The notes under the pieces: generated by a model | Database searches by the model: none | What the model saw: the letters and a program-made list of their open reading frames with translations, nothing else | What the model was told of the DNA's origin: nothing | Source of the DNA: Glycera tridactyla | Taxonomy: Eukaryota | Assembly: GCA_965644265.1 (NCBI GenBank) | Contig: OZ286467.1 | Span: 63,240,001-63,304,000, forward strand | Length of the DNA: 64,000 nucleotides | Direction: 5' to 3' | Shown here: piece by piece, positions 255-63,691 of the stretch | How the letters are laid out: each line of letters opens with the position of its first letter | How positions within the stretch are numbered: the first letter of the stretch is position 1 | Program-made: the position numbers and the translations under genes

Positions 255-1499
255 AAGCACCAGCCGTAGCGACCACAGGTATGTGAATGCCAGTTATTAT
301 CTATTGTTGTTAATTGTACCAACCACAACAAATTTATTCAAATGATGCATACATTCGATTTCTCCATCAGTCATTTGTCCATGCATATCCCAATTCATTT
401 CTAGGCAAGAAGTCATGGAAACGAAGATGGAGAGTTCTAAATTTGTTAAGATTTTTAATATTTCCCTCTGCTCATCTGGATATACAACTGATATAAGTGC
501 TATATTTTTTCACGATATTTGGACCGTATTTTCACGTATTTATGATACAGTAGATCAGATTGATAGTCAACAACATGCTGGTAACTCGTCATGAAGCTGT
601 GGTATTGATGCAGAAACATTTGAGAGGAATACCTCGAATAAATGTTCGTCCTACTTGCTTTCAGAAGCACCAGCAGCAGGAGCGACCACAGGTATGTGAA
701 TGCCAGTTGTTTTTTATTGTCATAGATTGTAACAATCACTCCAAATGTATCCGAATGATGCATACAATCGATTTCTTCATCGGTCATTTGTCCATGCATA
801 TCACAATTCATTTCAAGGAAAAGAGGCATGGAAGCGAAGAAAAAAAGTTCTAAATTTGATAAGATTTCTTTTTCCTCTGCACATCTGAATGTGATTCGTC
901 ATTTTTGAACCCAAAGTATGAGGTTCATTTGTGGTAACTAGTCAAACTCGAATGACAGCAGTCAGATCCTCGGTCGAAATGATACAAGCACAAGCAAAAG
1001 TTGGCATTGTACATTCGAAAATGTCAATGTGCTGCATGCTATCATTTCGAACTATTCTCCATCATTGTTGGTAAGCACCTGAGTCTTCTAATCGAATCTG
1101 AGGAAGTTAAGGCATGTTCATTTTTTGTCTTTGCACACATCTTAGATCTGACTGTATATCCCATCAATTTATGATGACAATGATGCAGTGAGTAGAAAGG
1201 ACTACTTTCACTGAATGTCTATCCTCTTTTCTTTCAGGAGCACCAGTAGCACCTACCACAGGTATGTAACCACCACTTGTTATTCCTTTGAGTAAGTTGT
1301 AACAATCTCATCATGGTTGATCGATATGATGCATATTTTTGACGATATCATTGTTCCTCCATTCATGCATATATCAATTCAATTCGAGGTAAAGAGCCAA
1401 GAGAGTGAAAATATTGAGTTGTTATTCATTATATTTCTTCTGTTCAAATCATCATTACAATGATTGATCTCACTGACTTGATCTCTCTGCAGACTCATC

Positions 1500-1561
<62 letters not shown>

Positions 1562-4500: not shown

Positions 4501-6782
4501 AGCTCACCTAATTGTGATCGATATTCATGCCTTTTGTTCATACCTCTTGGTGCACCGTATGTCGTGGATTCGTTTATTTACGAATGTTGTGAAATTATGC
4601 AAAATTGTAGGATGATTCATTCACAATGAAGATAAGTGGAGAAAATCAGACATGGTTGAGCATTATAAGCATCTCTCTTGCTGTTGATATCAGTGTTTCA
4701 CTCCAGTGACTATATGTAGTGATTCGCTGGCCTCAGGATCGGCAGCAACACATGATTGCTCCTACTGACTTTGTATCCTACTGACACGCTGGCCGCAGGA
4801 TTGGCAGCAACACATGATTGCTCCTACTGACTTTCTATCCTACTGACACGCTGGCTGCAGGATTGGCAGCAACACATGATTGCTCCTACTGACTTTGTAT
4901 CCTAGTGACACGCTGGCTGCAGGATTGGCAGCAACACATGATTGATCCTACTGACTTTGTATCCTAGTGACACGCTGGCTGCAGGATTGGCAGCAACACA
5001 TGATTGATCCTACTGACTTTGTATCCTAGTGACACGCTGGCTGCAGGATTGGCAGCAACACATGATTGATCCTACTGACTTTGTATCCTACTGACACGCT
5101 GGCTGCAGGATTGGCAGCAACACTTGATTGATCCTACTGACTTTGTATCCTACTGACACGCTGGCTGCAGGATTGGCAGCAACACATGATTGATCCTACT
5201 GACTTTGTATCCTAGTGACACGCTGGCTGCTGGATTGGCAGCAACACATGATTGATCCTACTGACTTTGTATCCTAGTGACATGCTGGCCGCAGGATTGG
5301 CAGCAACACATGATTGATCCTACTGCCTTTGTATCCTACTGACACGCTGGCCGCACGATTGGCAGCAACACATGATTGATCCTACTGACTTTGTATCCTA
5401 GTGACACGCTGGCCGCACGATTGGCAGCAACACATGATTGATCCTACTGACTTTGTATCCTAGTGACCCGCTGGCCGCAGGATTGGCAGCAACACATGAT
5501 TGATCCTACTGACTTTGTATCCTACTGACACGCTGGCTGCAGGATTGGCAGCAACACTTGATTGATCCTACTGACTTTGTATCCTAGTGACACGCTGGCT
5601 GCAGGATTGGCAGCAACACATGATTGATCCTACTGACTTTGTATCCTAGTGACACGCTGGCTGCAGGATTGGCAGCAACACATGATTGATCCTACTGACT
5701 TTGTATCCTACTGACACGCTGACCGCAGGATTGGCAGCAACACATGATTGCTCCTACTGACATTGTATCCTAGTGACACGCTGGCCGCAGGATTGGCAGC
5801 AACACTTGATTGATCCTACTGACTTTGTATCCTACTGACACGCTGGCCGCAGGATTGGCAGCAACACTTGATTGATCCTACTGACTTTGTATCCTAGTGA
5901 CACGCTGGCCGCAGGATTGGCAGCAACACTTGATTGATCCTACTGACTTTGTATCCTACTGACACGCTGGCTGCAGGATTGGCAGCAACACATGATTGAT
6001 CCTACTGACTTTGTATCCTAGTGACACGCTGGCTGCAGGATTGGCAGCAACACATGATTGATCCTACTGACTTTGTATCCTAGTGACACGCTGGCTGCAG
6101 GATTGGCAGCAACACATGATTGCTCCTACTGACATTGTATCCTAGTGACACGCTGGCCGCAGGATTGGCAGCAACATATGATTGATCCTACTGACTTTGT
6201 ATCCTACTGACACGCTGGCCGCAGGATTGGCAGCAACACATGATTGATCCTACTGACTTTGTATCCTACTGACACGCTGGCCGCAGGATTGGCAGCAACA
6301 CTTGATTGATCCTACTGACTTTGTATCCTACTGACACGCTGGCCGCAGGATTGGCAGCAACACTTGATTGATCCTACTGACTTTGTATCCCACTGACAAG
6401 AGGACACCAATGAGGAGTACATGACGCAATTTGATATTCAATTTTTACTATATTAGCCAAATGAATGCCCAATTTTGATATCATTATTGTTGGTGTGAAC
6501 CTTGTTGCCCCAATCGAATCTGTGGTTCACGGGCATGGATGCTGAGGTAATGGGTTCCATTGCTGAAATTCTTTCCGAAGTGATAGTGTTCATTTGGATA
6601 TGTGAATGCATTGCACACCTTTTCCATTCTCATCTCATATGATTCATGTACACATCCAAGAATTATTTTTTCATTCTTCTCCCCTACCCGTATATCCGAT
6701 CGATTTTAATGTTGAGGCAGAAATACTTTGACTGACTATTCATCTGATTTGCTTTCAGAAGCGCCAGCACCAGCTACCACAG
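255..6782 (+). CDS. First (diverged) microexon block: 255-278 EAPAVATT, 665-691 EAPAAGATT, 1238-1261 GAPVAPTT, 1719-1739 GPAPTTA, 2376-2447 GLTPFAGGEELTTTEPEEEEEFTT, 6759-6782 EAPAPATT
   Basis: Each has an AG acceptor and GT donor (e.g. tttcag|aagcgccagcaccagctaccacag|gtaagc). Lengths are 24, 27, 24, 21, 72 and 24 nt, all phase 1-1 and homologous to the downstream array exons. Confidence 0.85.
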
Positions 6783-9700
6783 GTAAGCAAACACAAGTTG
6801 TTATTTAGTGCCATCAGTCATTCCAATCCTACCAAATGGATCAAGATGATGATAATCTTCACTGCGTCGTCGTTCATTTGGCCATACATATCCCATTTCG
6901 TGGGGGCATGGAGGCAAGAGAGCGGAAAAAAATTATTGACAAATTCGATGGAGAAAAGTCTTTTCATTGTCCTGACCTGGATATGCTACTCACCTGAGCT
7001 CTCTCATTCTCGACCGTACTTTAGTCCCCCATCCTTACAAGGCAGTCAAAAAGTCATTGGCTCTCAAGCATGAACCTGTACATCTCCAAACATTTCTGCT
7101 GACCAGTCCAGTTCAGTCTTATTATACAGATCACCACTAACATCGATCATACTATTATTCTAATGACCTGAGTTTGTCGATTTCCCCTCTCATTCTCATT
7201 CATACCATCAGACCAATTAGGATGCTGGCCTATAGTTTGGTTTGAAATATGATCAATACCTTTCCAAATTACGGAGTTAATCAGGCAAACATAATTGATG
7301 ATCTTAGTCTATTTCTCGATCCTCATCAAAACCATTCTTTACTGAATAATTGTAGCATCAGATGAAGGGAATTTTCATGGATGACAATTTGTCCATTATC
7401 TGTAAATGTTGCTCATTTGCTCAGCGAATCGGTCGCGCATTATTCCCTACTCTATTCGAGCTATGTGTCTTCATGCAACCACACGTATATTGATACAATT
7501 TAGTATTCGAAAGTGATAATATATGGCCAATGAATGGGTCGAGTTGGGAATCACTTCGAAGAAAGTGGGTTCAAGTCTCCGATGATTGTGGAGTTGGTTT
7601 GAAGTTGATAGGTAATAATTGGATACAATGCTTGAGGATCCTTCGAACCTTTTGATTCTTCATGTTCTTAGAGATGTGTATTTCTGATAGGGGAGAATAG
7701 CTATCTGGTTCGAGAGTCAGTCACCAGCCATATACATAGTCAAATATGCCGTCAATAGTTCCTATATTTACAACCTTTCTGATCAATCAACATCTTATGT
7801 TCAGAAATCGTGATAGTGATGCCTGCAGGAAAGTTACCATGTATTTTTATTGAACAGAAACACATGGCCTGCATACTTTTGCGGGGTGATACATGCCTAT
7901 AAACCTTAACCAAAGCCAAACATTTAGTCAATGATCACATCATCATCTGGCATTGAATGAAAGCGAGAGCATATACATGGTCTTCTGGATAAAAAAACAA
8001 ACTAGCAAGTGGTAGCAAAGATCTATCTGTTAGTGATTCCGCCAAGGAGAGGCTAGTTCACTTCAGTGTACAAACTTTCATTGTACATCACGTGTCTGGT
8101 CTTAACGGGACCTAGTTTGGACTTCATCACGACACAAAGCTTTCCTCATCCTCGGGGACAGCGTAATTATATACTGAAAAAATGTGAAAGTAGTGCCCGC
8201 TTATGGCTTGCCTGTAGAATTCGTAGATATATAAACAACATCTTCAACGAAGCAGTGTATCTCGGGCCATGGGAATCTCACCTACAGCATGCATGTTTTG
8301 ATTCATCTCACAAGAATTGAACAGCGTAATGTTGGGGTGACATACCCCATCAGCGCTAAACCTACATGAATTCCAATATTCAGTTCTCCATCGTCTTAGT
8401 GAAGCAGAGTGCGTACCTCCTCAACTGGAGAATCTGACATCACATTGTACTGGCACACTAGAAATACAGAATTTTTCGAGGTGTTCTGTCACCGCTGCTG
8501 CATCCAAACATAATACGTTAGTTGTGCCATAGGGGAACCAATTCCAGCTGAAGTGATAATTTTCAAAGCTTCCTTCGTATAATTATTCAAACACCCCTCC
8601 AACCGCATGGAGTATTGCCGGCATGTATGTGAGATTGTACTCCGCGGATCCCGTGATGTGAGAGAGGCAACGTCACGCTCGAGTGAACTCCTCTCTCAGC
8701 CGGCGTTCTCGTTCTCGTTTTGTGACGTCAGGATTCACTTGTGAGGAGGATAGCATGGAGGAGCAGTACTTCGCTGACCGCTTACCAGATGGCGTGACAG
8801 TCAAATATGGCGAACGATCGGACGTCCCTGAGGATGTTCTTATAAACGAAGATGCTGACAACAATGACAACAGGCGATTAGATGTCACCTGCGATACGAC
8901 CTTGCTCATTGCAGATACCAGGTTAGTCCATACGGCTAAATGAGGTTTTATCGACTGTTGCGTACCCATCTGGTATGTCTGACACGTCTCCTCTGATAGC
9001 CCTTTACGCTGTGGTCACCAAAGTGGTCCATCTGCCCCATTGCAATATGTATACCTATGTAATTTGCTTATATGCATATACATGAATGCATATGTATGTG
9101 TTCATCACATGTATGTATGAGCATATGTGCATACAACGCTTATGTCCCGCACTCAATTTCCACGTCATTCTCCTGCAACCTGTTCATATTTGTTCGCTTC
9201 TTTCGTACAAATGTTCTTCACTCGAATGGGGACGACATAGTATTCTAGACCTTCCCGAGGCAGAATAAAGCATTTTCATATCAAATCGAAGCTAATCAAA
9301 ACAGATATATACATTCAAGACAAAATTGAATCCACTCAGTGACGTTGGAATCATTCAATGACATAGGAAACAATCAATGACATCAGAACTCTCATTTTGT
9401 TAGATAAATCCCAAAATGACGAGAAATATCCACTGACCCACCTATATCTATTTTCTACTGGAAGAATATCTCTGTCAAGTCTTGACTGTCATCTGCCAGC
9501 TATGCATTGATGACAGCTGTGATGGTGGGTAGCTCATGCTTCTTTCAGTGGTTTGAACTCAAAAATTGATGAGTGCAGTTACACGGAACAGTGTAATTAG
9601 GCCACTTTATACATCTGTTGAGGACTAGTAAACTAGTCTTGTGATCCGCTGTACTGAATCAGTGATCTACTGTGCTGATTTAGTAAGCTACTAGAATCAT

Positions 9701-12696: not shown

Positions 12697-12734
<38 letters not shown>

Positions 12735-21700: not shown

Positions 21701-22477
21701 ACCAGACCGAATGTAAGCAACCTGATGAGCCTATCCAATGACTTTCAGGACATGACAAAGCAAGTGAAGTTAAGACGCATGTGTTCAGTGAACAATATCA
21801 AGTATTTCAGTCGTCTCCTAGAAAGCCTATATATGCCACGACGCAAGATCTTCTTTCCATGAATCCCCACATTTCCGTGAATCCCCACAGTCGGGAAATA
21901 TCACTTCTTATATTCTATGATACAAGTATATGTATATCTATTGTGATGTAATTTGTGTATATGACACGAGAGAATTTTCTACCCATGTATGAATTATTTT
22001 ATGTAACTGCCCGTAATAATGCAACTTAAACCGGTTAGTGTATGTAGTATTAGGTAAAAGGATGGAACACAACACACTTATGTCTCAGTGGTAATTGAGG
22101 AGTTACATCGAGTCGGATAGGCCCGTCAGGGGCCGGGAGCTTGATTATCTACGTATTTTAATTATATTGAAATGAATCTGAATTCTGAATTGCATGTGAT
22201 AATATGAGCCTAAATGTACGATTTTTTGAATTTATTGAATTTGAATGTATACGTATTTATTATAAATATTGAATTTTGAATTTGAATATTGAATCGCATA
22301 TGATGTCATAAACCTATATGTATGAATTTCTGAATCCATTAAATTTGAATTTGAATTTTTCGAATGTATACGCAAAATGCATGTGAAATGAAATATGACG
22401 TTTGGAACACCTTCATTAAGTATATAATGCTGACGACTCGTTAATAAAGAATTGTTAATTGTTATATATATTTGTGC

Positions 22478-22522
<45 letters not shown>

Positions 22523-23034
22523 TGCGTGCGTATATGCATGCATATAACAATATGAAAAAACAACTACTCCTTGACTGGCGAATATTCTCTTTTCACCTAT
22601 GATCTTTTGTGGATTACAGCTGGTTGTCCGTTCGATACAACGCTGGCGGACGCAACCTCGTCTAACACCAGCCCGAATACGGACACGGCAGACATGTCCT
22701 GGGTCGGAAGTGGCACTTTCTGGCAGTGCGATCCCGCTATGGATGCGGCACAGACGGCTGCGATCACTATTAGCGTCAACGCTGGTCCTCGATCGTTCAC
22801 TAGTATTCAGTTTGAATGCAAATGCGTCTCTGTGTACACCATCCAAGTCTTCGAAAACATGTTCTCCATGAACCACGAAATAGCACGGGTATGGCATCTG
22901 GCATTTAGCAAACATGTATATATTTATATTTGATGGCCTAGATGACAAACAGATGGACAGATAGACAGGTAGACAGATAGGCAGACTGATGAGCCATGAA
23001 ATAACACGGGTATGGCATTTCTTATTCAGCGAAC

Positions 23035-23100
<66 letters not shown>

Positions 23101-28711: not shown

Positions 28712-28759
<48 letters not shown>

Positions 28760-29187
28760 TTCACCGCTACTGCTACTACTTTTACTACTATTTAGCTACT
28801 AATACTACAACTACTATCAACATTACCACTACTGGTGCTATCACTACTACCACTATAAACGATCAAATTTCGGGGATGAACTTATCAATGAGCTTGTTGA
28901 TTTGGCTGTCGATTCGACCTTGGTAATGACGTATATGGTTATGACAAAGCATCGGAAGATTTCTGTTAGACATTAGACCAGGTATACCAAATTGGAAGTA
29001 GGAAATATCGATCAGATTTATGATGACTCTATTGAGGTTTGTTACACCCAGGCACAGAGAAAATATCATGGAGTGGCCTTAATAAAGAGGTCATTTACTG
29101 TTGAAAGTACTATCACGGTCGCAGTTCAGGGTGATTTTTATAGGGAGGTGGTCTTTATAGAGAGGTCGTCTTCAGAGAAGGTTCGAC

Positions 29188-29235
<48 letters not shown>

Positions 29236-56200: not shown

Positions 56201-59200
56201 TTGGTAACTCTCGGTCTCCCTCAGCGTTCTCATATGCTTGTCTCACTATCTGTTGTATCCAGGTTGAGACCCTGTCTACTCTTATCTCGCTTGATGTACC
56301 TCTATTTGGTGGAATTAGCAATCTAATTCTATTTGCTCTAAATTCCGCCACTCTCTCCAGATATGTATTGAGGATTCTTACTGGACATAAAGCAAGATCG
56401 AAGTCTGTTCTATTTCCTGAGTTCAAAGCTGGTATAATAATCTCTGGACCTCTAGATGAAGGCTTCTGGTTCTTTGCTAAGAACCCTGGAACCGAGAATA
56501 TTCGAACTCTAGAACGGTCTGCAGCAAATCTTACTGCCGAAGAGAACGCATGAATCTCACTTCTGCGCCTGCCCGAGGCCAGTGCCAACAGAAAAACAGT
56601 TTTCCTAGTCAAGTTGACTAAGCTACAAGATTCAAGGGGTTCAAAAGTACCTCCTTTAAGGAATCTCAAAACAATTGCAATATCCCAAAGAGGGACTGTT
56701 TTCTGCTGCACCGGTCTCTCAAGCTCAAGATTATTCTGCAAGGCTTTCAGGTCTTTTCCATTTAAAACTTGACAGTCTGTATGAATGAAAACTGACTGGA
56801 GGGCGTTACGGTAACCCCAAATCGTAGCTGGTTTCAGGCCCGATTCAAATAGCTCTATGAAAAAATCTGCTACTTCTGGAGTAGAGGGGTTCTTACAATC
56901 CACCCCATGGCTCCTGCTCCAGAAAAACCACTTTTTCCATCTACTGTTGTAGATGGATGCGGAAGATCCTCGGATGGACCTAGCGATCCGCTCTGTCGCC
57001 TTTGCAGAATAACCTTTGCTTGAGAGGGCTCCCCGGACAGACACCAAGCGGTCAGCCCCATCAACTGAGGACGAAAATGATGGACTCTCTTCCTCCCTAC
57101 TATTTGTGTCATCATCTGATTGCAAAGAGGCAATTCCAGGGGCTGATCTATTGATAGTTCTAAGAGATCCGGGAACCACGACTGATTCGGCCACCATGGT
57201 GCTATGCAAATCAGTGTGATTCCCAGACCCCTCAGCTTCCCTATGACATCTTTGATCATTCCTGTTGGCGGGTATATATAGGCTAGCCCTAGGTTGTTCC
57301 AGTCTGTTGACATTGCATCTACCGCTAAAGCTTCCTGATCTGGAATTGGGCTTATGAAAATGGGTAGTTTGGTATTTTGGGCCGTTGCCATTAGGTCTAT
57401 ATTCGGGAATAGGTTGAATCTCACTAAAATCTGATTGAATATCTGTTGGTCTAGTTCCCATTCCGTCTGAATGGGTTTCGCTCGGGAGAGAGCATCTGCA
57501 ATGACATTCCTCTTCCCCGGAATATGTCTGACCTGAATAAATAGTTGTAGAATCTCCGCCAACATGAATATTTGCCACGCCAGGCCGCATAGAAGTGATG
57601 AGTGGGTGCCCCCCTGCTTGGCTAGGTAAGACACTGTTGTTGTGTTGTCTGAGAGCACCAGCACTACCTGAGATTGAAGATGCATAGAGAACTCTTTCAT
57701 TGCTAAAAGTACTGCTTCTAGCTCTAATGCATTTATAGATCTCCCCCTGTGTGTTGCTGGCCACTCTCCTGCACACTGGAGTCGATGATCCTCCACTGTG
57801 AGGTATGCACCCCATCCTTGCAGGGAAGCATCCGTCATCAAGGTTACTGTAACCTGACGTGGTCTCAGAGGAACTCCTCCGTATACATTTTCCTTCTGTT
57901 GCCACCATTTCAATGTCTCTAGAATAGGACTGGGGACAGTTAGAAGAATTTCTAGAGAGTCCATGAATGGGCGCCATTCCGATAACAGAAACATCTGTAG
58001 AGGACGCATATGTAGGCGTCCCATGTGTACGAAATCCGACATGCTGGACATGTGTCTGAGCAGTCTCAGAATGGCTCTGGCTGGCTGCCGAGGTCTCCTC
58101 AGGAACAGTAGAATGCAAAGATTGATCTTTACCACTCTCCTCCATGCAGGCTTTACTAGACACTCTTGAGTATTGAAATCTATCCCGAGATAAGTAAATT
58201 GTTGACTTGGAATTAGGTCTGACTTTTCTTTGTTGACTATCAGTCCCAAGTTCCCTGATAGGTCTAGGACGTATTTCAACTGCTCCTGAAGAATGGATGG
58301 GTCCTGGTGCCTCAGCAGCCAGTCGTCCAGGTAAAAATGTATTCTTATTCCTCTCTGATGGAGGTGTTGCGCCACTTCCCTCAGCACCATGGTAAAGACC
58401 CTGGGTGCTGAGGAAAGGCCGAAGGGGAGGGCTCGAAACTGATAAGCCTCCTCCTTCGACACAGCAAAACGCAGATACTTTTGAAAACTCTGATGGATCG
58501 GCACATGAAAATATGCATCTTTCAAGTCTATGGAGACCGTCCAATCTAGTGGTGCTATTGACTTCACCACAGATAGGGCGGTCTCCATCTTGAACTTCTG
58601 ATTGTGAATCAGGGTATTCAATGGTCTTAAATTGATAATTGGCCGAAATCCCCCTGTTGCCTTGGAGACCAGGAACAGATTGCAATAAAACCCTGGTTCC
58701 TCGTCCGGATTGATTCTGATTATTGCCTGTTTCTGAATCATGTTCCTGATCTCCAAGAATAAGGCTTCTTTCTTCTCCTTGTTCTTCGGTAGAGAGAAAG
58801 GGAGGGCAACTGGAGAAAGTGGAGGAAGTTCCTTGAAAGATAGGGTGAGACCCTCCTTGATTATTCCTAAGACAAATCTGTTGGTGGTTAGGCTGTGCCA
58901 TTGAATCTGAAATTCCATCAAACGAGCTCCTACAATCTGCGTCCCCGAGGGAGTGACGCTCGTCTCCCTAGGGCCGACGTTTCTTTCCGCGTCCCCTCCC
59001 TCTAGGAAATCTACCTCTCAACTCTTGATTGGACTTTTGAAACTGCTGTTGGTTATTGTAGTCATTACTATTGTCATTCCTATTGTTATTCTGTGCTCCT
59101 CTACCTCTACCTCTGCCTTTTGATCTCTGCCCTCCTCTTCCTCTAAAGGTACCTCTACCTCTAAACTGGGAAGATCCTCTTGGTGTTCCTGCTGTCTGAG

Positions 59201-62200
59201 AGCGTAAATATCCGGGAGTTCTATAATCAAAAGCTAACTCTCTGGATACTCTCCCTGCTTCGAATGATTGCTTGGATGCCTCTAACAATTTTCCTCCAAA
59301 CAATTCCTCTTGGCCTAGAGGTAAGGCTCTAAGCTGGGACTTGGTCTCCTCATCAAAATCTAGAGTTCTAAGAGCTTGTGTTCTCCTCCCCAACTCCATG
59401 TTCCCTGCAACCTTTAATATTAGTTGGGCAGTGTGACCGATGGCCTTTAAACCTACCCTGGTTGCGTTCTTGGCTTTCTTCTTGATGTCCTTGACCTCTG
59501 CCTCGGGAACATCAGCAGCACATAAACTAGAAGCAAGGGCAAAGTCCGCGTAACTAAGTGTTTTGACTGCTTCTCTCAGAGTTATTTCATCGTTTGAGGG
59601 CTTTAGATCAACTTTGGAAGGTTTACTATATTTGACAAAATCCGAGTCTATTAGAGGAGCCTCTACCAGATAACGTTTTGACCTTTCACCAGTTCTCCTG
59701 ATTTTATAGGATCGAGAATTGCAGCCATATACTCTAGGTATAGCAACTCTGAAATATTTAGCTGAGGATCCCACCATTCCTCCTCTGTCTAATTTGAAGT
59801 CTTCAAAGGAAGTCGATATTGGTATGAGCTTCTGACCCTTGTCGCGGCCTTGAAGAGCTCTATCCAGAATTTCTTGGCTGTTAATGAGTAGATAAGACAA
59901 TGGTAAAGATGTCTCAGCCAAATTCTCGACTTCTCTGCCTTCATCATCATCATCTTCTGACATTTCTATACCATGAGTCTGAGCTACGCCTTCTCCTTCC
60001 TTGTCAAATGGATCAGGAACTGAAATAACGGATGGGAGCATTTCTGCTGCAAATCTACGGAAGGCTCTCATTCTTCTACGTACTGCTGGTCTCTCCTTTT
60101 CCCCTTCAGAATCCTGACCTGAGTCCTCCTTCTTGTTCTCCTCATTTTTCTTCTCTAACTTACTAGCTAAAGAATCTATCTTCTGCTGCATGGCTTGAAA
60201 CCTAGCTTCAGAATGCAAGTCATCTCTTCTTCTATTTCCCAATTCCTCTACTGCTTCCTTATCAGATCTACTATCACCCATGACAGCAACCTTATTTGGT
60301 GCGGCTGCAGTACATGGAATAATTCTCATGGCCTTTGGCAATCTGATTGGCAAGTCCTGTTCTACTGAACTCTGGTTCTTCCTTCTAGTAGAAAGTGATT
60401 TTATTGGGCTAGGGTTCATCCTAGATCTAGCCTCTTCCATAAACATGTCTAATTCTCTGAGCTTATCTTCCATTTCCTTTTTCTTTTGAGATAGCTCGAT
60501 AAACTGACTTCTCACTGAGGAGCGAACGGAGGATGGAGAGCCAAACACAGTTGGTTGTAGGGTATTGTCTTCTTCATCATCTAAATTATCTCTATGCACT
60601 ATAGCCTGGACTGTCCTACTGTGTTGCTGTGAGATAATATGATGGTCTTGGCCAATAAACTCATGAACTGGTGAGGATTCTATATCCACTATATTCCTCA
60701 ATTGGTTCTCATCATTGGCCTGAGTAGGAGAAATCTCATTATCGGATACTTGTGAGGAAGCGGCATGAGACACTACTTTCAATCGGTCATTGACTATGGC
60801 CCCTTCTGATACTGAGGCAGAGTGTCTACTTTGCCCTCCGCAATGAGAATCAACCCTTCGGTTGCTAGTTTTCTCATCCAGACCCTGGTTATCTACTGCC
60901 GGGACATCAGCGGCTATGTTTTTCCCCCTGTCCGTTGGTGTATTCCTCTTTGTCTGTTCTATCTGGGAAGAGTTCTCAGTGACCCTTTGACTGAGCTCCT
61001 CCCTAACTGACCTATTAGTCCCGATACCAACTGGACGAGGAATACTACTTCTTCTAGAAACAGATCTGGATCCTATTGATGATCTATCCAACTCAATATT
61101 ATGTTGGGCTAAACTCTTGTTCAGCGAGTTAGAATCTATACCATGATCCGACCTGTTTTCCTCTTGGGTACGATGTCTACCCTCCAAAGGTGAGGGTCCA
61201 GAGACATCAGGAGGTTCTGTATTCCCAGAGTCTAATGGTTCAGCTTCATTCATTTTCTCTCTCTCTCTCTTTCTAGCTAGCTCCTTCCTTTTCTTGATGG
61301 ACTCAACTGATTGAGGTCTCAGTTCCAACTCGTCAGCTAAACTACTGCTAGCTTCAGAGATGTTGGTCCTAGCAGGGAGCTTAGCCAAAACTATCTTCGC
61401 AGATTTGAGCTTTTTGGTAGCTAGTTCCTTATACGTGATTGGTTCAGAACTAACTGAGACTCTGGGGATACTATCACAAGAAACTGTTCTTCTTCTGAGA
61501 GAGAGGGTACGTCTAGTATAATGTGCTTCCCACCTATCTTTGGGCCATTCAGCACAGATTTCACACATCTTCTGGTTGCCGGAATTGAAATCCCTATCTC
61601 CGCACTGTCTGCATAAGGGACAAGTTTGATGATTATCCCAAGTTGGCATAACGTGCCCACAGGAGCCATTTTTCAAACCAGAAGACATGTTGAAGTATGT
61701 TAAGTCTGGGTGACCTTTTCTCTTCAGTTGGGTGTACAATTGCAGTGATCTATATTATGACCGGGAGTGAGTCAGCATTCACTGGTGATGACTGTAAAGG
61801 ACAAGAGCAAGATATGAAAATCACAGACGTCAGTACGCCATTTCACAACTCTATAGTGACTACACCGACCTAAGTCATTTCTGCCAAAAGACAACAAAGA
61901 ACACTTGTTTGTTGGATATATTATTTGTACATCATAAAGCTCAACATTCAATAAATAATGCCATGTCTGAGTGAAGTGTTATGTCAGAATGCTCAGCGGG
62001 AGTAACTGCTCACTGGAGATGAGTGTGATATTTCCAGGATGCTCAGCAAGAGTAACTGCTCCCAGGAGACGAGTGTGATTTAGATAAACAGAGCCGCGAT
62101 CAAGTAGCGTCCGTAGCAACCGAGACAACGAAGTGTGACGGAGAATAAACGTAATTCCACCACTGACAATGTCACCAAATCGATTCGAATTCTCTCTAAT

Positions 62201-63691
62201 GCATTGCGAGAGCGTAAACAAACTATCGCAATCAGGAATCTACTCGCGCAATACGTACGGGAGTCGAACACACGATTATATCATCCAGCCGGGACTGCCG
62301 GCAGCGTAGACGACGTTTAGCCGGGATTGCGTGCCAGTCTACCGGCAGCGCTTCCGACCGTCTGGCCAAAGAGACCATCCAACGCGCGATCCTGATTCGA
62401 ATTCTCTCTAATGCATTGCGAACCCGTAAACAAACCTATCTGTCGCGCAATGAAAAATTGACGAACCGCCGACTGGATAATCAGACTGCGAACCGTACCC
62501 AACCGGCCACCGAAACTATCGTTGACACCACTCACATTTATCTCCAATGCATTGCGAGACGTGAACAAACATTTCCGCGTTCCGCCGATCAACACGATCG
62601 GAGCTGTCAACTCATACTGATATGAAATTCACAGACACACTACATTGACCACTACATGTAGGCGTCATTTCAACACTTCAAATCACATCAAATCACATCA
62701 AATCACAATAATCACACTCTATGCCTCCACCCCCGGTCACGGCGATCACCGCACACGCGCGAGCGTGCGTACCCAACGCAACTGTCACTTTCTTACTATT
62801 TGTTCGCAAAACTATCCAATAGAACAATCCGAGATCATGTTAGATCCTAGTCTGTAAACAAACAATTATGATCCAATGCTCGAAATCGCAATCGCGGATA
62901 GCCGTAGGCCTCGTAATATCGACGAATTACGGAGCCCAGGTATTCCTCAACCTTCTCGTACAACGCGAAGTTGAAAAATACACAGAGTACTCGGTAGTTG
63001 CTAGGGACAACAACAACAGTCCCACCTGCCATCTGGAGGAACTACCGGCGGCCGGGAGGGACACCCCTAAATAGGATATTTATTGTTTTAATGTTCGCAC
63101 GTAGGCCTATCGGCCCGGGGAATGCTAAATTTGAGGGAGAAATGGTACAGATAGATCTAATTTTACTTAATGTTCATCCTCTTTGCTTTCAGAAGCACCA
63201 GCAGTAGGTACCACAGGTATGTAAACACCAGATTCTATTTTTTGCCGTCAGTAGTACCAACCTCGCCAAATTGATCAAATTGACCAATATATGATATCAT
63301 CATCCATCATTTTCCTATGTGTATTCCGATTCATTCCAGGGCAAAGAAGCATGAGAGCAACAATAATTAGTTCCGGATTCTATAGTTGATCATCTATTCT
63401 CCCAAGTCTGTCCTAAAGATATTGGTACTCCAGATTGATCAGGTGCATCTCGAAAAATATATGTTGGCTATTTCATTCAAATGCAATGGATCATCACTGA
63501 CTTTGCATATGTGAGCCTCATCACAATCGACATTCATATGTCATTCGATCAAGTCGAAAATGCGAAAAAACTATTCATGGATGGCCATTTCATCAAAAAT
63601 TCTGTCACTCCAAAATATTATTATAATAATTTATCTTACTCACTTTGTTATCTGTGTCTACTTACAGCAGCCCCAGGAGCACCTACAACAG
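255..63691 (+). CDS. Partial multi-exon gene (about 72 exons, about 1,028 aa in window) for a mucin-like Thr/Ala/Pro-rich protein with three paralogous Cys-bounded domains; start and stop lie outside the window
   Basis: Exons read manually from pyrimidine-tract+AG acceptors and GT(A/G)(T/A/C)GT-type donors. Splice phases chain without frameshift or stop: phase-1 microexons, domain 1 (1-2,2-0,0-1), domain 2 (same), two microexons, domain 3 (1-0,0-1), then microexon array. No transcript evidence is available. Confidence 0.85.
1501..1561. repeat. (CAT)n microsatellite
   Basis: Direct reading. Confidence 0.98.
4077..4234. mobile_element. 158-bp MITE (Tc1/mariner-pogo type ends)
   Basis: TIRs cagtaatcctgtccacagtga / tcactgtagacaggttttactg flanked by TA on both sides (4075-76, 4235-36); internal direct duplication. 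Confidence 0.75.
4726..6398 (+). repeat. 62-bp minisatellite, about 27 copies
   Basis: Unit ggcagcaacacatgattg(a/c)tcctactgactttgtatccta(c/g)tgacacgctggc(c/t)gcaggatt; ggcagc at 4741, 4803, 4865, 4927 and onward. Confidence 0.97.
8732..8921 (+). CDS. Domain 1 exon a (190 nt): GFTCEEDSMEEQYFADRLPDGVTVKYG...RRLDVTCDTTLLIADTR
   Basis: gtcag|ga acceptor, accag|gttagt donor. Paralogous to 13954-14143 with identical length and phase. Confidence 0.85.
9811..9913 (+). CDS. Domain 1 exon b (103 nt): (R)IGVTTLKRLEVVVWGMTSLSFRLTDSAGEQMLEQ
   Basis: caacag|g acceptor, cag|gtgagt donor. Paralogous to 14805-14907, also 103 nt. Confidence 0.88.
10944..11240 (+). pseudogene. Decayed non-LTR retrotransposon RT fragment (CR1/L2-like)
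   Basis: TCLLKDLDNV...LGLKKAFGIVEHVPLITKL and CRVPQGSISGLSLFNLHIN resemble RT motifs LDL.KAFD.V.H and GVPQGS.LGP.LF; stops and frameshifts. Confidence 0.7.
12394..12550 (+). CDS. Domain 1 exon c (157 nt): VGLPVGSTDPISVTASHSGELFERIAIEFHGCSADRPAFIKQAVVQVCHTPM
   Basis: ctttcag|gtt acceptor, atgt|gtgagt donor. Paralogous to 16864-17020, also 157 nt. Confidence 0.85.
12681..12880. repeat. (ATT/ATC)n low-complexity tract
   Basis: Direct reading. Confidence 0.95.
13079..13114 (-). ncRNA. Minimal type I hammerhead-ribozyme-like motif
   Basis: Minus strand CCAC-CUGAUGA-AGA(ugcag)UCU-GAAA-AGCU-UC-AUGG: complete core, 3-bp stem II, palindromic AAGCUU stem III, stem I with one mismatch at 1.1. Confidence 0.6.
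13954..14143 (+). CDS. Domain 2 exon a (190 nt): SYECGEGSLEEEFSHDELPYGVEVSY...RQLNVTCDTSLIISDQR
   Basis: accag|ca acceptor, cagag|gtaaac donor. Same size and phase as 8732-8921. Confidence 0.85.
14247..14672. other. Assembly gap (426 N)
   Basis: Run of n. Confidence 1.
14805..14907 (+). CDS. Domain 2 exon b (103 nt): (R)PGTTTLKRLKVEIKGVTSLNFRLSDADGGQMLEQ
   Basis: ttgacag|a acceptor, caa|gtgagt donor. Clear paralog of 9811-9913. Confidence 0.88.
15295..16060. repeat. (ATCC)n-rich degenerate tetranucleotide tract
   Basis: Direct reading. Confidence 0.92.
16186..16585. repeat. 200-bp direct tandem duplication
   Basis: caaagccacc at 16201 and 16401; atatatgtgtattag at 16371 and 16571. Confidence 0.9.
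16864..17020 (+). CDS. Domain 2 exon c (157 nt): VDVPQASSETTTVISSNSGENFESITVEFLTCNTDGPVFIRQVVVQVCYTPS
   Basis: cccaag|gtt acceptor, agtc|gtaagt donor. Paralog of 12394-12550. Confidence 0.85.
17095..17690. repeat. ~40-43 bp minisatellite (about 14 degenerate copies)
   Basis: Core gaagcatatcatattcgacc recurs at about 17271, 17313, 17355, 17396, 17438, 17479 and 17521. Confidence 0.88.
20707..20727 (+). CDS. 21-nt linker microexon (P)QATTEA
   Basis: tttttggttccag|...gaagcag|gtatgt; phase 1-1. Confidence 0.78.
20749..20882. other. Assembly gap (134 N); could hide a microexon
   Basis: Run of n. Confidence 1.
21290..21310 (+). CDS. 21-nt linker microexon ARATTEA
   Basis: tttttggtttcag|...gaagcag|gtatgt; paralog of 20707-20727. 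Confidence 0.78.
21400..22190 (+). pseudogene. 5'-truncated LINE 3' end (C-terminal Zn-finger region and 3' UTR)
   Basis: Frame-shifted KPKLRTY, RSVTAKFLCGILPLEIEVGRY and LCNICKNGEVEDEAHIVFECNEY motifs typical of L2/Crack-type ORF2 C-termini; tgaa-rich tail near 22170-22190. The 3' boundary is approximate. Confidence 0.75.
22481..22518. repeat. (TG)n microsatellite
   Basis: Direct reading. Confidence 0.97.
22620..22888 (+). CDS. Domain 3 exon a (269 nt): AGCPFDTTLADATSS...TFWQCDPAMDAAQTAAITISVNAGPRSFTSIQFECKCVSVYTIQVFENMFSMNHEIAR
   Basis: ttacag|ct acceptor (phase 1), cacgg|gtatgg donor (phase 0); open frame. WQCD aligns with VTCD of domains 1 and 2. Confidence 0.72.
23043..23091. repeat. 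(TA)n microsatellite
   Basis: Direct reading. Confidence 0.97.
23260..23434. other. Assembly gap (175 N)
   Basis: Run of n. Confidence 1.
24029..26185 (-). mobile_element. Decayed Penelope-like element (RT plus GIY-YIG endonuclease)
   Basis: Broken frames carry KLKSHF, IVIRKADKGS, PGRHIVSANECPTEK, MDVTSLQANIP, RRGY and RPPDLRDLL. At about 24190-24458 the frame reads CQFC...SCQSSDIIHCITCKKYKK*CVGQTSNSLHMRFEAH (GIY-YIG-like). Confidence 0.85.
26501..26617. repeat. GC-rich imperfect palindrome (MITE-like)
   Basis: Arms tgtgacactcgagctgggatcggggagcgggcgacgtagcacc / ggtgctactgcagcccactcgccgatcccagctctcgtatcaca, with inner hairpin gagcgc-aac-gcgctc. Confidence 0.75.
26935..27000 (-). mobile_element. 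Short LINE-like 3' tail remnant
   Basis: Minus strand reads caataaacagttttgaatcttgaatcctgaatcttgaat: AATAAA followed by a short tandem tail. Confidence 0.4.
28526..28682 (+). CDS. Domain 3 exon b (157 nt): GEPTDLSSFESTGIIPIDPSNMWQIIHIILVPGGGCLPAVENLRLNIPCPET
   Basis: tttttgcag|ggc acceptor (phase 0), acaa|gtaagt donor (phase 1). Same 157-nt length and phases as the last exons of domains 1 and 2. Confidence 0.75.
28713..28756. repeat. (CTG)n microsatellite in the intron after domain 3
   Basis: Direct reading. Confidence 0.97.
29068..29189. mobile_element. Probable half MITE with pogo/Tigger-like TIR
   Basis: Ends in agagaggtcgtcttcagagaaggttcgactg (reverse complement cagtcgaaccttctct...) with repeated gagg motifs; partner TIR not found. 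Confidence 0.35.
29195..29232. repeat. (AT)n microsatellite
   Basis: Direct reading. Confidence 0.97.
30164..30187 (+). CDS. 24-nt microexon (T)AKAAVTT
   Basis: tttttcag|cagcaaaagcggcagtcacaacag|gtatgt; NAGNAG acceptor. Confidence 0.75.
30575..30583 (+). CDS. Candidate 9-nt microexon EAQ
   Basis: cttcattgattttcag|aagcacaga|gtaagt; in frame, at the position expected for an EAP-type exon. Confidence 0.45.
31099..35719 (+). CDS. Array unit 1 exons: 31099-31122, 31463-31486, 31986-32006, 32651-32725, 33371-33394, 33657-33680, 34196-34219, 34491-34505, 34764-34787, 35047-35070, 35696-35719
   Basis: Encodes AAPGAPTT EAPAVATT GPAATTA GLTPFAGGEELTTTAAEEEEKVFTT GAPAAATT EAPEVPTT AAPGAPTT AVATT EAPAAATT EAPAVGTT EAPAVGTT (303 nt, 101 aa). 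All boundaries AG/GT, phase 1-1. Confidence 0.87.
36170..40742 (+). CDS. Array unit 2 exons: 36170-36193, 36532-36555, 37056-37076, 37727-37801, 38445-38468, 38722-38745, 39219-39242, 39514-39528, 39787-39810, 40070-40093, 40719-40742
   Basis: Same 11-exon order; second exon reads EAHAVATT; splice sites intact. Confidence 0.87.
41193..44883 (+). CDS. Array unit 3 (short, 9 exons): 41193-41216, 41555-41578, 42079-42099, 42749-42823, 43468-43491, 43754-43777, 44292-44315, 44587-44601, 44860-44883
   Basis: Lacks EAPAAATT and one EAPAVGTT module; last exon reads EAPAVVTT. Confidence 0.87.
45334..49958 (+). CDS. Array unit 4 exons: 45334-45357, 45696-45719, 46220-46240, 46890-46964, 47608-47631, 47894-47917, 48435-48458, 48730-48744, 49003-49026, 49286-49309 (donor mutated), 49935-49958
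   Basis: Second exon reads EAQAVATT; exon 49286-49309 is followed by atatgt instead of gtatgt. Confidence 0.85.
50409..63216 (+). CDS. Array unit 5 exons: 50409-50432, 50771-50794, 51295-51315, 51966-52040, 52684-52707, 52970-52993, 53467-53490, 53762-53776, 54035-54058 (acceptor mutated), 54318-54341, 63193-63216
   Basis: Last intron carries the DIRS insertion; acceptor of 54035 reads tttctt instead of tttcag. Confidence 0.85.
54932..55146 (-). repeat. DIRS right (3') ITR (54960-55146) plus 28-bp extension (54932-54959)
   Basis: Matches 62970-63157 in inverted orientation; the extension has no counterpart at the other end. Confidence 0.92.
55190..55283. other. DIRS internal complementary region (ICR)
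   Basis: 55190-55246 is the reverse complement of 54932-54988, and 55247-55283 is the reverse complement of 63121-63157, i.e. the circle-junction sequence. Confidence 0.95.
55395..55880. repeat. 86-91 bp tandem repeat in the DIRS 3' untranslated region (about 5 full copies plus decayed ones)
   Basis: ccttgtctctc recurs at 55401, 55487, 55573, 55662 and 55753. Confidence 0.9.
55977..58901 (-). CDS. DIRS ORF3: tyrosine recombinase in the C-terminal ~320 aa, with a long N-terminal part overlapping pol
   Basis: Catalytic set present: GRRRSE (R), LAKNQ (K), AHEVR (HxxR), AYW (W), NFYLRD (Y). Confidence 0.95.
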   Translation of the reverse strand: MAQPNHQQICLRNNQGGSHPIFQGTSSTFSSCPPFLSTEEQGEERSLILGDQEHDSETGNNQNQSGRGTRVLLQSVPGLQGNRGISANYQFKTIEYPDSQSEVQDGDRPICGEVNSTTRLDGLHRLERCIFSCADPSEFSKVSAFCCVEGGGLSVSSPPLRPFLSTQGLYHGAEGSGATPPSERNKNTFLPGRLAAEAPGPIHSSGAVEIRPRPIRELGTDSQQRKVRPNSKSTIYLSRDRFQYSRVSSKACMEESGKDQSLHSTVPEETSAASQSHSETAQTHVQHVGFRTHGTPTYASSTDVSVIGMAPIHGLSRNSSNCPQSYSRDIEMVATEGKCIRRSSSETTSGYSNLDDGCFPARMGCIPHSGGSSTPVCRRVASNTQGEIYKCIRARSSTFSNERVLYASSISGSAGALRQHNNSVLPSQAGGHPLITSMRPGVANIHVGGDSTTIYSGQTYSGEEECHCRCSLPSETHSDGMGTRPTDIQSDFSEIQPIPEYRPNGNGPKYQTTHFHKPNSRSGSFSGRCNVNRLEQPRASLYIPANRNDQRCHREAEGSGNHTDLHSTMVAESVVVPGSLRTINRSAPGIASLQSDDDTNSREEESPSFSSSVDGADRLVSVRGALSSKGYSAKATERIARSIRGSSASIYNSRWKKWFFWSRSHGVDCKNPSTPEVADFFIELFESGLKPATIWGYRNALQSVFIHTDCQVLNGKDLKALQNNLELERPVQQKTVPLWDIAIVLRFLKGGTFEPLESCSLVNLTRKTVFLLALASGRRRSEIHAFSSAVRFAADRSRVRIFSVPGFLAKNQKPSSRGPEIIIPALNSGNRTDFDLALCPVRILNTYLERVAEFRANRIRLLIPPNRGTSSEIRVDRVSTWIQQIVRQAYENAEGDRELPTNISAHEVRAIAASWRSLNQTCPIDELMRAAYWKSGNTFGNFYLRDMCNQALDIYSLGPIVVAQSVIDPRGETE
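56870..58921 (-). CDS. pol: DIRS ORF2: reverse transcriptase, RNase H and methyltransferase-like domain
   Basis: VGARL start motif just upstream (frame open from 59017). RT motifs IDLKDAYFHVP, LPFGL, FYLDD; RNase H motifs TDAS..GWGA, INALELEAV, SDNTT, ADALSR; DIRS MT-like DLMA...DAMSTDW...YIYPP. Confidence 0.96.
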   Translation of the reverse strand: MMEFQIQWHSLTTNRFVLGIIKEGLTLSFKELPPLSPVALPFSLPKNKEKKEALFLEIRNMIQKQAIIRINPDEEPGFYCNLFLVSKATGGFRPIINLRPLNTLIHNQKFKMETALSVVKSIAPLDWTVSIDLKDAYFHVPIHQSFQKYLRFAVSKEEAYQFRALPFGLSSAPRVFTMVLREVAQHLHQRGIRIHFYLDDWLLRHQDPSILQEQLKYVLDLSGNLGLIVNKEKSDLIPSQQFTYLGIDFNTQECLVKPAWRRVVKINLCILLFLRRPRQPARAILRLLRHMSSMSDFVHMGRLHMRPLQMFLLSEWRPFMDSLEILLTVPSPILETLKWWQQKENVYGGVPLRPRQVTVTLMTDASLQGWGAYLTVEDHRLQCAGEWPATHRGRSINALELEAVLLAMKEFSMHLQSQVVLVLSDNTTTVSYLAKQGGTHSSLLCGLAWQIFMLAEILQLFIQVRHIPGKRNVIADALSRAKPIQTEWELDQQIFNQILVRFNLFPNIDLMATAQNTKLPIFISPIPDQEALAVDAMSTDWNNLGLAYIYPPTGMIKDVIGKLRGLGITLICIAPWWPNQSWFPDLLELSIDQPLELPLCNQMMTQIVGRKRVHHFRPQLMGLTAWCLSGEPSQAKVILQRRQSGSLGPSEDLPHPSTTVDGKSGFSGAGAMGWIVRTPLLQK
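58968..61739 (-). CDS. gag: DIRS ORF1, gag-like (first ATG at 61688, 906 aa)
   Basis: N-terminal Cys/His cluster (CGHVMPTWDNHQTCPLCRQC...CEIC), acidic/coiled middle and RG-rich C-terminus. Lies first in the element; function is inferred from position. Confidence 0.8.
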   Translation of the reverse strand: MYTQLKRKGHPDLTYFNMSSGLKNGSCGHVMPTWDNHQTCPLCRQCGDRDFNSGNQKMCEICAEWPKDRWEAHYTRRTLSLRRRTVSCDSIPRVSVSSEPITYKELATKKLKSAKIVLAKLPARTNISEASSSLADELELRPQSVESIKKRKELARKREREKMNEAEPLDSGNTEPPDVSGPSPLEGRHRTQEENRSDHGIDSNSLNKSLAQHNIELDRSSIGSRSVSRRSSIPRPVGIGTNRSVREELSQRVTENSSQIEQTKRNTPTDRGKNIAADVPAVDNQGLDEKTSNRRVDSHCGGQSRHSASVSEGAIVNDRLKVVSHAASSQVSDNEISPTQANDENQLRNIVDIESSPVHEFIGQDHHIISQQHSRTVQAIVHRDNLDDEEDNTLQPTVFGSPSSVRSSVRSQFIELSQKKKEMEDKLRELDMFMEEARSRMNPSPIKSLSTRRKNQSSVEQDLPIRLPKAMRIIPCTAAAPNKVAVMGDSRSDKEAVEELGNRRRDDLHSEARFQAMQQKIDSLASKLEKKNEENKKEDSGQDSEGEKERPAVRRRMRAFRRFAAEMLPSVISVPDPFDKEGEGVAQTHGIEMSEDDDDEGREVENLAETSLPLSYLLINSQEILDRALQGRDKGQKLIPISTSFEDFKLDRGGMVGSSAKYFRVAIPRVYGCNSRSYKIRRTGERSKRYLVEAPLIDSDFVKYSKPSKVDLKPSNDEITLREAVKTLSYADFALASSLCAADVPEAEVKDIKKKAKNATRVGLKAIGHTAQLILKVAGNMELGRRTQALRTLDFDEETKSQLRALPLGQEELFGGKLLEASKQSFEAGRVSRELAFDYRTPGYLRSQTAGTPRGSSQFRGRGTFRGRGGQRSKGRGRGRGAQNNNRNDNSNDYNNQQQFQKSNQELRGRFPRGRGRGKKRRP
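62970..63157 (-). repeat. DIRS left (5') inverted terminal repeat, 188 bp
   Basis: Reverse complement of 54960-55146 except a 3-nt mismatch near the tip and a 1-nt indel. Confidence 0.93.
63668..63691 (+). CDS. First exon of array unit 6 (AAPGAPTT); array runs off the window
   Basis: cttacag|cagccccaggagcacctacaacag|gtacgt. Confidence 0.87.

Follow-up and report, generated by a model that had tools for sequence, protein, structure and literature searches.

A candidate modular gene with one octapeptide repeat per 24-nt microexon, arranged in a hierarchical array on contig OZ286467.1

The window analysed here is the whole of a 64,000-nucleotide (nt) stretch of contig OZ286467.1 (assembly GCA_965644265.1, positions 63,240,001 to 63,304,000 of the forward strand). 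It is AT-rich (GC 0.34-0.46), is interrupted by three N gaps, and its plus strand carries a long series of very small exon-like units that spell a Thr/Ala/Pro-rich repeat, one unit at a time. As an exon-like unit we take YAG/N(3k)/GTAYG together with a polypyrimidine tract; in the first 6 kb a typical unit reads ttacag/AAGCACCAGCCGTAGCGACCACAG/gtatgt. A looser scan, for AG/N(3k)/GT units with Thr, Ala and Pro making up at least 60% of the phase-1 translation, recovered on the plus strand every place listed in an earlier note on this DNA, and on the minus strand only unrelated microsatellite matches. A stricter scan, demanding YAG, at least 14 pyrimidines among the 20 nt upstream and a GTAYG donor, returned 51 distinct units on the plus strand, none on the minus strand and 0-1 in 50 block shuffles. 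The number of exon-like units is far beyond chance. Altogether the plus strand holds 62 canonical units and two more with a damaged splice site, all of them multiples of three in length, and the earlier note's count of about 64 symmetric exons (58 plus six) is thereby recovered, each exon in its place.

Fifty-four of the canonical units form an array at 30164-63691 (38 of 24 nt, five each of 21, 75 and 15 nt, and one of 9 nt). Six others, of 24, 27, 24, 21, 72 and 24 nt, form a first group at 255-6782, hereafter stalk 1. When the array units are concatenated, phase 1 is free of stop codons whereas the other two frames contain 28 and 5. The last base is G in 53 of the 54 array exons, every stalk exon is phase 1-1, and 56 of the 70 exons in our full model are at most 27 nt long and a multiple of three. 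The array introns measure 253-650 nt, except for one of 908 nt and one of 8851 nt, the latter with a DIRS-like insertion inside. The earlier note had called the gene giant, a word that fits its genomic span only: the array product is 492 amino acids (aa) long.

The array is hierarchical. Tandem Repeats Finder reports 283-bp units that recur at a spacing of about 5 kb, and repeat modules of 0.28-0.65 kb are nested within superunits of 11 exons and about 5 kb, five aligned copies of which are pairwise 95.5-98.2% identical. Within a superunit the exons encode, in order, AAPGAPTT, EAPAVATT, GPAATTA, a 75-nt exon (GLTPFAGGEELTTTAAEEEEEVFTT), GAPAAATT, EAPEVPTT, AAPGAPTT, AVATT, EAPAAATT, EAPAVGTT and EAPAVGTT. 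Only 15 distinct 24-nt exon sequences occur, and the 64 exons are about 20 types, recently amplified; thus, although the count in the earlier note stands, the exons are not so many independent cassettes, most being recent duplicates. The copies (U1 to U6, Table 1) have begun to differ. In U3 a deletion of about 0.9 kb removed two exons and the frame was kept, in U4 the copy of exon 10 at 49286-49309 has its donor mutated from gt to at, and in U5 the copy of exon 9 at 54035-54058 has its acceptor mutated from cag to ctt, with an in-frame AAG acceptor 3 nt downstream that would yield a 21-nt exon. Part of the superunit has an older paralogue in the stretch 255-2447 of stalk 1, whose introns are homologous as well.

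Four independent signals indicate that these units are coding exons. Among the young superunits, variable columns number 5 of 279 in exons versus 311 of 4248 in introns (Fisher p=8.5e-5), so that exon columns are four times less variable than intron columns. Between the old paralogues, stalk 1 and the array, exons are 79%, 95% and 92% identical with a sole exon indel of 3 nt, whereas identity falls to 66-71% in three flanking intron segments, each with 64-78 gap columns. When ten diverged modules are aligned, the polypyrimidine tract and AG, the exon and the GTATGT donor stand out as the most conserved parts, at 0.84-0.91 as against about 0.6 in the introns; the sole change of exon length there is +3 nt. 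Lastly, the EAPAVATT exons at 255 and 31463 differ at three sites and the two AAPGAPTT types at two, and all are synonymous; with one third of sites synonymous, five of five among same-peptide exons would arise with a probability of about 0.004. Codon-position diversity is 0.08, 0.26 and 0.28 at positions 1, 2 and 3, a clear 3-periodicity. Purifying selection thus acts on the exons, and the reading as a gene is well supported by these evolutionary signatures. Likewise, the earlier note's description of phase 1-1 exons with one repeat each holds up: in the scans and in their selection signals the units behave as real coding microexons.

The same comparisons bear on a more sceptical account, that the array is largely a non-functional expansion of which few exons are used, be it a decaying pseudogene, a young satellite-like amplification or partly an assembly artefact. 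The superunits are indeed very young (2-4.5% divergence), yet splice sites are already damaged in two copies; a seemingly complete DIRS element of 8.2 kb lies 35 nt from an exon, and the scaffold contains N gaps. However, the constraint on exon columns is visible even in the young copies, long-term constraint is seen between the old paralogues, and no array exon contains a stop or a frameshift in phase 1. Private substitutions, a deletion and the DIRS insertion distinguish the copies as distinct loci rather than assembly duplicates. We regard this account as very improbable.

What kind of protein would such a gene encode? The array product consists of 29.3% Ala, 26.0% Thr, 12.4% Glu, 12.4% Pro, 8.7% Gly and 6.1% Val, and has no Ser. 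Repeats of the proline/threonine/serine (PTS) type have been defined by a Ser plus Thr content of at least 20-25%, a Pro content of at least 5% and at least four repeats (PMC2515642). The composition of the array passes these thresholds (T 26.0%, S 0%, P 12.4%), and so does the number of its repeats, more than 50 of octapeptide type in 5.5 superunits; the label of mucin given by the earlier note is therefore justified by composition, and no further than that. Nearly all exons start with x-A-P and end with T-T, therefore the sequence TT-x-A-P is rebuilt at the junctions whichever exons are joined. Pro at +3 favours GalNAc-transferases, and TT-x-A-P would be a favourable context for mucin-type O-GalNAc addition. 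The Thr codons are conserved while neighbouring positions vary, and an acidic, partly hydrophobic insert, contributed by the 75-nt exon, recurs once in about 101 residues. Judged from these features the product is most likely an extended, O-glycosylated, negatively charged stalk between globular domains.

On the other hand, the repeats could form an unglycosylated disordered spacer or entropic spring of the titin PEVK or elastin type, in which the threonines are incidental. The high Ala (29%), Glu (12%) and Val (6%), the absence of Ser and the position of the repeats between globular domains are all in keeping with such a spacer, and elastin and titin PEVK are likewise encoded by many short symmetric exons. 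However, an invariant Thr-Thr ends nearly every exon, Pro always follows at +3/+4 across the junction, and conserved Thr codons amid variable neighbours are what is expected if the threonines are the selected feature. A spring of this kind is therefore, in our judgement, an unlikely alternative to the glycosylated stalk.

A further question is whether the exons are a combinatorial set. The splice sites have donors of the form CAG/GTATGT or CAG/GTACGT, acceptors with long polypyrimidine tracts, and a TACTGAA/TACTTAA-like motif about 22-28 nt upstream of the acceptor. Together with the short introns, these signals suggest efficient recognition rather than weak, regulated cassettes. In many modules of the EAP/GAP type a TGC triplet lies 7-9 nt upstream of AG (cttTGCtttcag; e.g. 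31452-31462), and in GPAATTA exons it lies at -5 (ttTGCag). UGC close to the 3' splice site typifies microexons that depend on SRRM3/4; here the triplet may simply be inherited from the ancestral module. A search for intronic inverted repeats and for RNA-pairing or docking-type elements gave four short weak pairs only.

The earlier note had suggested a combinatorial system that diversifies lengths and glycosites, since any subset of cassettes can be skipped in frame. Stochastic or regulated skipping would then give each individual a repertoire of lengths and glycosite patterns, as proposed for the schistosome micro-exon genes (MEGs) and SmPoMuc. With symmetric stalk exons throughout and a final G in 53 of 54, any subset would join in frame with junction residues unchanged, and exons as short as 9-27 nt are by nature hard to define. 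Some copies are weaker, namely a 15-nt exon with a tatag acceptor and the two copies with damaged sites, and alternative splicing has been proposed for the MEGs and for Muc13 (PMC4350168, PMC1552070). Symmetry and the terminal G, however, follow automatically from the duplication of one ancestral exon with a CAG/GT donor; they permit skipping and do not argue for it. The splice sites are strong, conserved and close to consensus, introns of 250-650 nt favour constitutive splicing by intron definition, no pairing architecture was seen in the search described above, and since the peptides are near-identical, skipping would alter little but length. Thus in-frame skipping is allowed by the symmetry of the exons, and nothing in the sequence speaks for diversification by it; we find combinatorial use improbable. 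The same low probability applies to the wider form of the idea, a MEG/SmPoMuc-like system outside the flatworms, with at least 60 junction-invariant cassettes skipped variably so that a lineage-restricted surface or matrix protein would come with many different stalk lengths and patterns of O-glycosites, and with a copy number evolving fast by unequal crossing-over.

We favour a history of duplication for the putative glycosylated stalk. The nested repeats are best accounted for if a module of about 0.28 kb, exon plus intron, was duplicated repeatedly. These duplications would have given rise to a superunit of 11 exons and about 5 kb, made of ten microexons and one 75-nt acidic exon, which would then have been amplified at least 5.5 times by unequal crossing-over. 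Because stalk exons are all phase 1-1 and end in G, the gain or loss of copies, a dead splice site or the skipping of an exon all keep the frame and leave neighbouring residues unchanged. The length of the array would vary mainly by recombination, and some exon skipping may occur, with no indication that it is the purpose of the design.

The stalks are accompanied by two globular modules. Self-comparison of translated fragments revealed two paralogous Cys-bounded domains, A and B, each of 150 aa and encoded by three exons (a, b and c). They are 44-62% identical exon by exon at the aa level, and both spliced open reading frames (ORFs) are open. A whole module, A or B, is phase 1-1 and therefore plugs directly into the microexon chain. 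A Pfam scan of the six domain exons, each taken singly, returned no family; given the bounding Cys residues, a discoidin-type or another beta-sandwich fold is conceivable. When a profile of exon a was run against 1.84 billion representative proteins, no protein of this gene was recovered, and among the 59 matches listed a single one, P0013 (E=8e-8), is full-length, the other 58 covering part of the query only. P0013 is encoded on a 560-bp metagenome scaffold, L001 (ENA ERZ23486739), where the homologous exon is exactly 190 nt long (170-359), follows the same gtgacgtcag acceptor as exon a in the window and is succeeded by a gt donor. L001 is probably from another species; by eye it is more GC-rich than the window. 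Given that the homologue keeps both the 190-nt length and the acceptor, the 150-aa domain is, to judge by this conservation, a real, lineage-restricted coding unit with a conserved intron position.

Several observations accompany these domains. On L001 a possible 21-nt phase 1-1 unit lies at 111-131, 38 nt upstream of the exon-a homologue, and is probably a chance occurrence. The motif LPDGVTVKY (8772-8805), LPYGVEVSY in domain B (13994-14027), has dozens of partial matches to bacterial LPxGVTVSY...AGxY repeats, which extend over 20-25 residues only. Two of the partial exon-a matches that were inspected, P0001 and P0003, are long bacterial repeat proteins with many LPxGVTVSY copies, aligned to query positions of about 11-37, and were rejected as motif-level resemblance; we judge the likeness to be probable convergence at the level of the motif. 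Look-alikes of exon a in the ESM Atlas scored 0.37 at best and were dismissed as noise. Directly downstream of the last exon of domain B, at 17089-17681, are 41/83-bp tandem repeats of about 14 copies with 74-88% identity.

Can all these parts be read as one gene? Leading into the array is a 157-nt exon (28526-28682) in which one frame alone runs through the donor without a stop. Since exon 21290-21310 leaves off in phase 1 and exon 28526-28682 begins in phase 0, joining them takes an intermediate exon that shifts the phase. The sole candidate that combines strong splice signals with the right phases is a hypothetical link exon of 227 nt; if it is included, 70 exons coding for 998 aa can be chained across the window without a stop. 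The single reading frame claimed in the earlier note is thus found within the array, whereas across the window it hangs on this one hypothetical exon. In domain B the N gap at 14247-14672 interrupts the intron that separates exons a and b, with phases that match across it (2 to 2), and domain A has no exon in the corresponding intron. The gap at 20749-20882 starts 21 nt past the donor of 20707-20727, in the intron between the two 21-nt microexons, and that at 23260-23434 lies in transposable element (TE)-rich sequence, in the intron upstream of the link exon, with no identified exon nearby. All three gaps fall in introns of the model and may conceal exons.

The long introns contain other elements. 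An open-frame fragment at 21445-21801 on the plus strand has a Cys/His-rich motif, LCNICKNGEVEDEAHIVFEC, and resembles the C-terminal end of ORF2 in non-LTR retrotransposons; it is probably a piece of a TE within the long intron. A 62-bp satellite at 4717-6398 (27 copies, 96% identity) occupies much of the 4.3-kb intron between 2376-2447 and 6759. Two intronic microsatellites are (TCA)22 at 1495-1561, in a stalk-1 intron, and a perfect (CTG)15 at 28713-28757, which starts 31 nt past the donor of 28526-28682. Measured on the 625-nt reference intron, the insertion point of the DIRS-like element of U5 falls between positions 590 and 592. The element stops 34-35 nt short of exon 63193, immediately before the branch-point-like motif TTACTTAAT, and it may impair inclusion of that exon. 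Its open ORFs are of 974, 683 and 923 aa, the 974-aa ORF being tyrosine-recombinase-like in its C-terminal half; an RT/RNase H ORF matches RVT_1 at 1.4e-25 and, weakly, RNase H and a Dam-like methyltransferase. One and the same 24-nt stretch occurs, inverted, close to both ends (54993-55016 and 63101-63124), and positions 55397-55826 are taken up by an 86-bp tandem repeat. The closest matches of its reverse transcriptase are 57-61% identical, while bivalve or bivalve-host contaminant matches reach 42-44%. These matches carry no sign of a flatworm, and the organism would be an invertebrate, possibly a lophotrochozoan.

Table 1. Modelled exons and other features of the window; each superunit starts at the first position of its first exon.
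Feature	Positions	Strand	Description and support
Stalk 1, six phase 1-1 exons	255-278; 665-691; 1238-1261; 1719-1739; 2376-2447; 6759-6782	+	EAPAVATT; EAPAAGATT (27 nt); GAPVAPTT; GPAPTTA; 72 nt, GLTPFAGGEELTTTEPEEEEEFTT; EAPAPATT. Splice sites, paralogue identity
Domain A, 150 aa, Cys-bounded	8732-8921; 9811-9913; 12394-12550	+	190 nt, phase 1 to 2; 103 nt, 2 to 0; 157 nt, 0 to 1. Open spliced ORF, canonical splice sites
Domain B, 150 aa, paralogue of A	13954-14143; 14805-14907; 16864-17020	+	Lengths and phases as in A
Paralogous 21-nt phase 1-1 microexons	20707-20727; 21290-21310	+	xQATTEA; ARATTEA. Unit scans
Hypothetical link exon	24417-24643	+	227 nt, phase 1 to 0. Sole candidate that combines a strong polypyrimidine tract, a gtgagt donor and the right phases
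157-nt exon leading into array	28526-28682	+	Phase 0 to 1 (GEPTD...NIPCPET). ttttgcag acceptor, gtaagt donor
Lead-in microexons	30164-30187; 30575-30583	+	24 nt, AKAAVTT type; 9 nt, sole exon ending in A. Unit scan
Superunit U1, 11 exons	31099-31122; 31463-31486; 31986-32006; 32651-32725 (75 nt); 33371-33394; 33657-33680; 34196-34219; 34491-34505 (15 nt); 34764-34787; 35047-35070; 35696-35719	+	
Superunit U2, 11 exons	36170-36193; 36532-36555; 37056-37076; 37727-37801; 38445-38468; 38722-38745; 39219-39242; 39514-39528; 39787-39810; 40070-40093; 40719-40742	+	96.4% identical to U1
Superunit U3, 9 exons	41193-41216; 41555-41578; 42079-42099; 42749-42823; 43468-43491; 43754-43777; 44292-44315; 44587-44601; 44860-44883	+	4141 bp
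Superunit U4, 10 canonical exons	45334-45357; 45696-45719; 46220-46240; 46890-46964; 47608-47631; 47894-47917; 48435-48458; 48730-48744; 49003-49026; 49935-49958	+	
Superunit U5, 10 canonical exons	50409-50432; 50771-50794; 51295-51315; 51966-52040; 52684-52707; 52970-52993; 53467-53490; 53762-53776; 54318-54341; 63193-63216	+	
Superunit U6, first exon	63668-63691	+	AAPGAPTT; array continues beyond window end
DIRS-like retroelement	54932-63158	-	8.2 kb, apparently intact; in last intron of U5

Taken together, we read the locus as the interior of a real-looking large gene for a modular, probably extracellular protein with acidic spacers rich in Thr, Ala and Pro, each 24-nt exon contributing one octapeptide, a reading to which we give a probability of about 0.72. 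Several points weigh against it. The join from 21310 to 28526 is weak, as it rests on one hypothetical exon with no homology evidence. We considered whether the link exon and exon 28526-28682 together form a third paralogous domain; the score of this pair against a hidden Markov model (HMM) of A and B was no better than those of 2000 shuffles, and the pair is kept only as a phase-compatible hypothesis. HMMs of the single domain exons found no match in 17-28.7 kb, and exon 28526-28682 is 23% similar to exon c of domains A and B, which is not significant. A clean excess of diversity at third codon positions was looked for and not seen, positions 2 and 3 being similar. There is no transcript, EST or protein support: a 56-aa query spanning exon junctions drew a blank in protein collections apparently without this species, and because the species appears to be missing from them this blank is uninformative. 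Its absence is suggested by a best match of only 61% for the DIRS reverse transcriptase and by the outcome of the exon-a search. An exact-pattern scan and a domain scan of JGI metagenome contigs were both empty. No signal peptide, transmembrane segment, VWD or SEA domain was found in the window, with Pfam run on single exons; the first unit, at 255, is an internal exon and the 5' end of the gene lies outside the window. Finally, the absence of Ser and the dominance of Ala are atypical for classical mucins.

If expressed as modelled, the protein would be among the most extreme of those built from one repeat per microexon, eight residues costing about 450 nt of intron at a coding density of about 5%, and it would probably lie outside the platyhelminths, the group believed to hold most such architectures. 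The locus would offer a natural test bed for the definition of serial 24-nt exons, it shows a hierarchical expansion of exon-intron modules, and it allows a test of whether recombination or splicing governs the length of a PTS domain, as was asked for chicken Muc13 in 2006. Genes of this class are likely to be missed by ab initio gene finders and by standard RNA-seq aligners. The 150-aa Cys-bounded domain, in turn, has almost no detectable relatives by the exon-a profile search.

How does the locus compare with known systems? In SmPoMuc of Schistosoma mansoni a 27-bp exon 2 lies in a genomic repeat of about 1 kb, present in up to about 20 tandem copies whose introns are more than 94% conserved (PMC2576457). 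The likeness is evident: each tiny exon holds one unit of a mucin-like repeat and forms part of a tandemly repeated genomic module whose introns are conserved, here with exons of 24 nt in modules of 0.28-0.65 kb. Unlike SmPoMuc, the present locus is hierarchical (superunits of 11 exons and 5 kb), comprises at least 60 exons of about 20 types, and has a 75-nt acidic exon and novel 150-aa Cys-bounded domains alongside, in what is probably an organism other than a flatworm. For SmPoMuc, a small multigene family, transcripts, recombination and aberrant splicing have been documented, whereas this locus is known from genomic sequence alone. Nothing seen in the window hints at homology to the conserved C-terminal region of SmPoMuc, although no comparison aimed at it was made. 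In chicken and zebrafish Muc13 the PTS domain is spread over multiple exons with one repeat each, and control of its length by alternative splicing has been proposed with EST support (PMC1552070). The statement of the earlier note that most mucins encode the PTS region in one huge exon had left out this precedent, in which both the one-repeat exons and the splicing idea already appear (PMC1552070). The two share one PTS repeat per exon; Muc13, however, is a mucin with SEA, EGF and transmembrane segments, none of which was detected here in the Pfam scans of single exons, and the exons of the present locus are much smaller, far more numerous and from a different lineage. The design of one repeat per microexon is thus rare, with precedents in schistosome and chicken mucins.

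MEGs have coding sequences composed mostly of very small symmetrical exons that can be skipped in frame, and are apparently restricted to platyhelminths (PMC4350168). Most coding exons are very small and symmetrical in our model too (56 of 70 at most 27 nt). MEGs encode small secreted proteins and their micro-exons are mostly non-repetitive, whereas the microexons described here are tandem paralogues that would form a repeat domain in a large multi-domain protein. Titin PEVK, elastin and fibrillar collagen have low-complexity segments built from many short symmetric exons by duplication of exon-intron modules, and in PEVK and elastin the length is tuned by the splicing of cassette exons. Their exons are typically of 27-190 nt, in contrast to 24 nt here; they are unlike the present array in composition and function (spring, elastomer, triple helix) and not homologous to it. 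The locus is thus best described as a known architecture with new features, namely its scale, its hierarchy, its smaller exons and the novel domains that flank them, and its likeness to schistosome and vertebrate genes is one of architecture.

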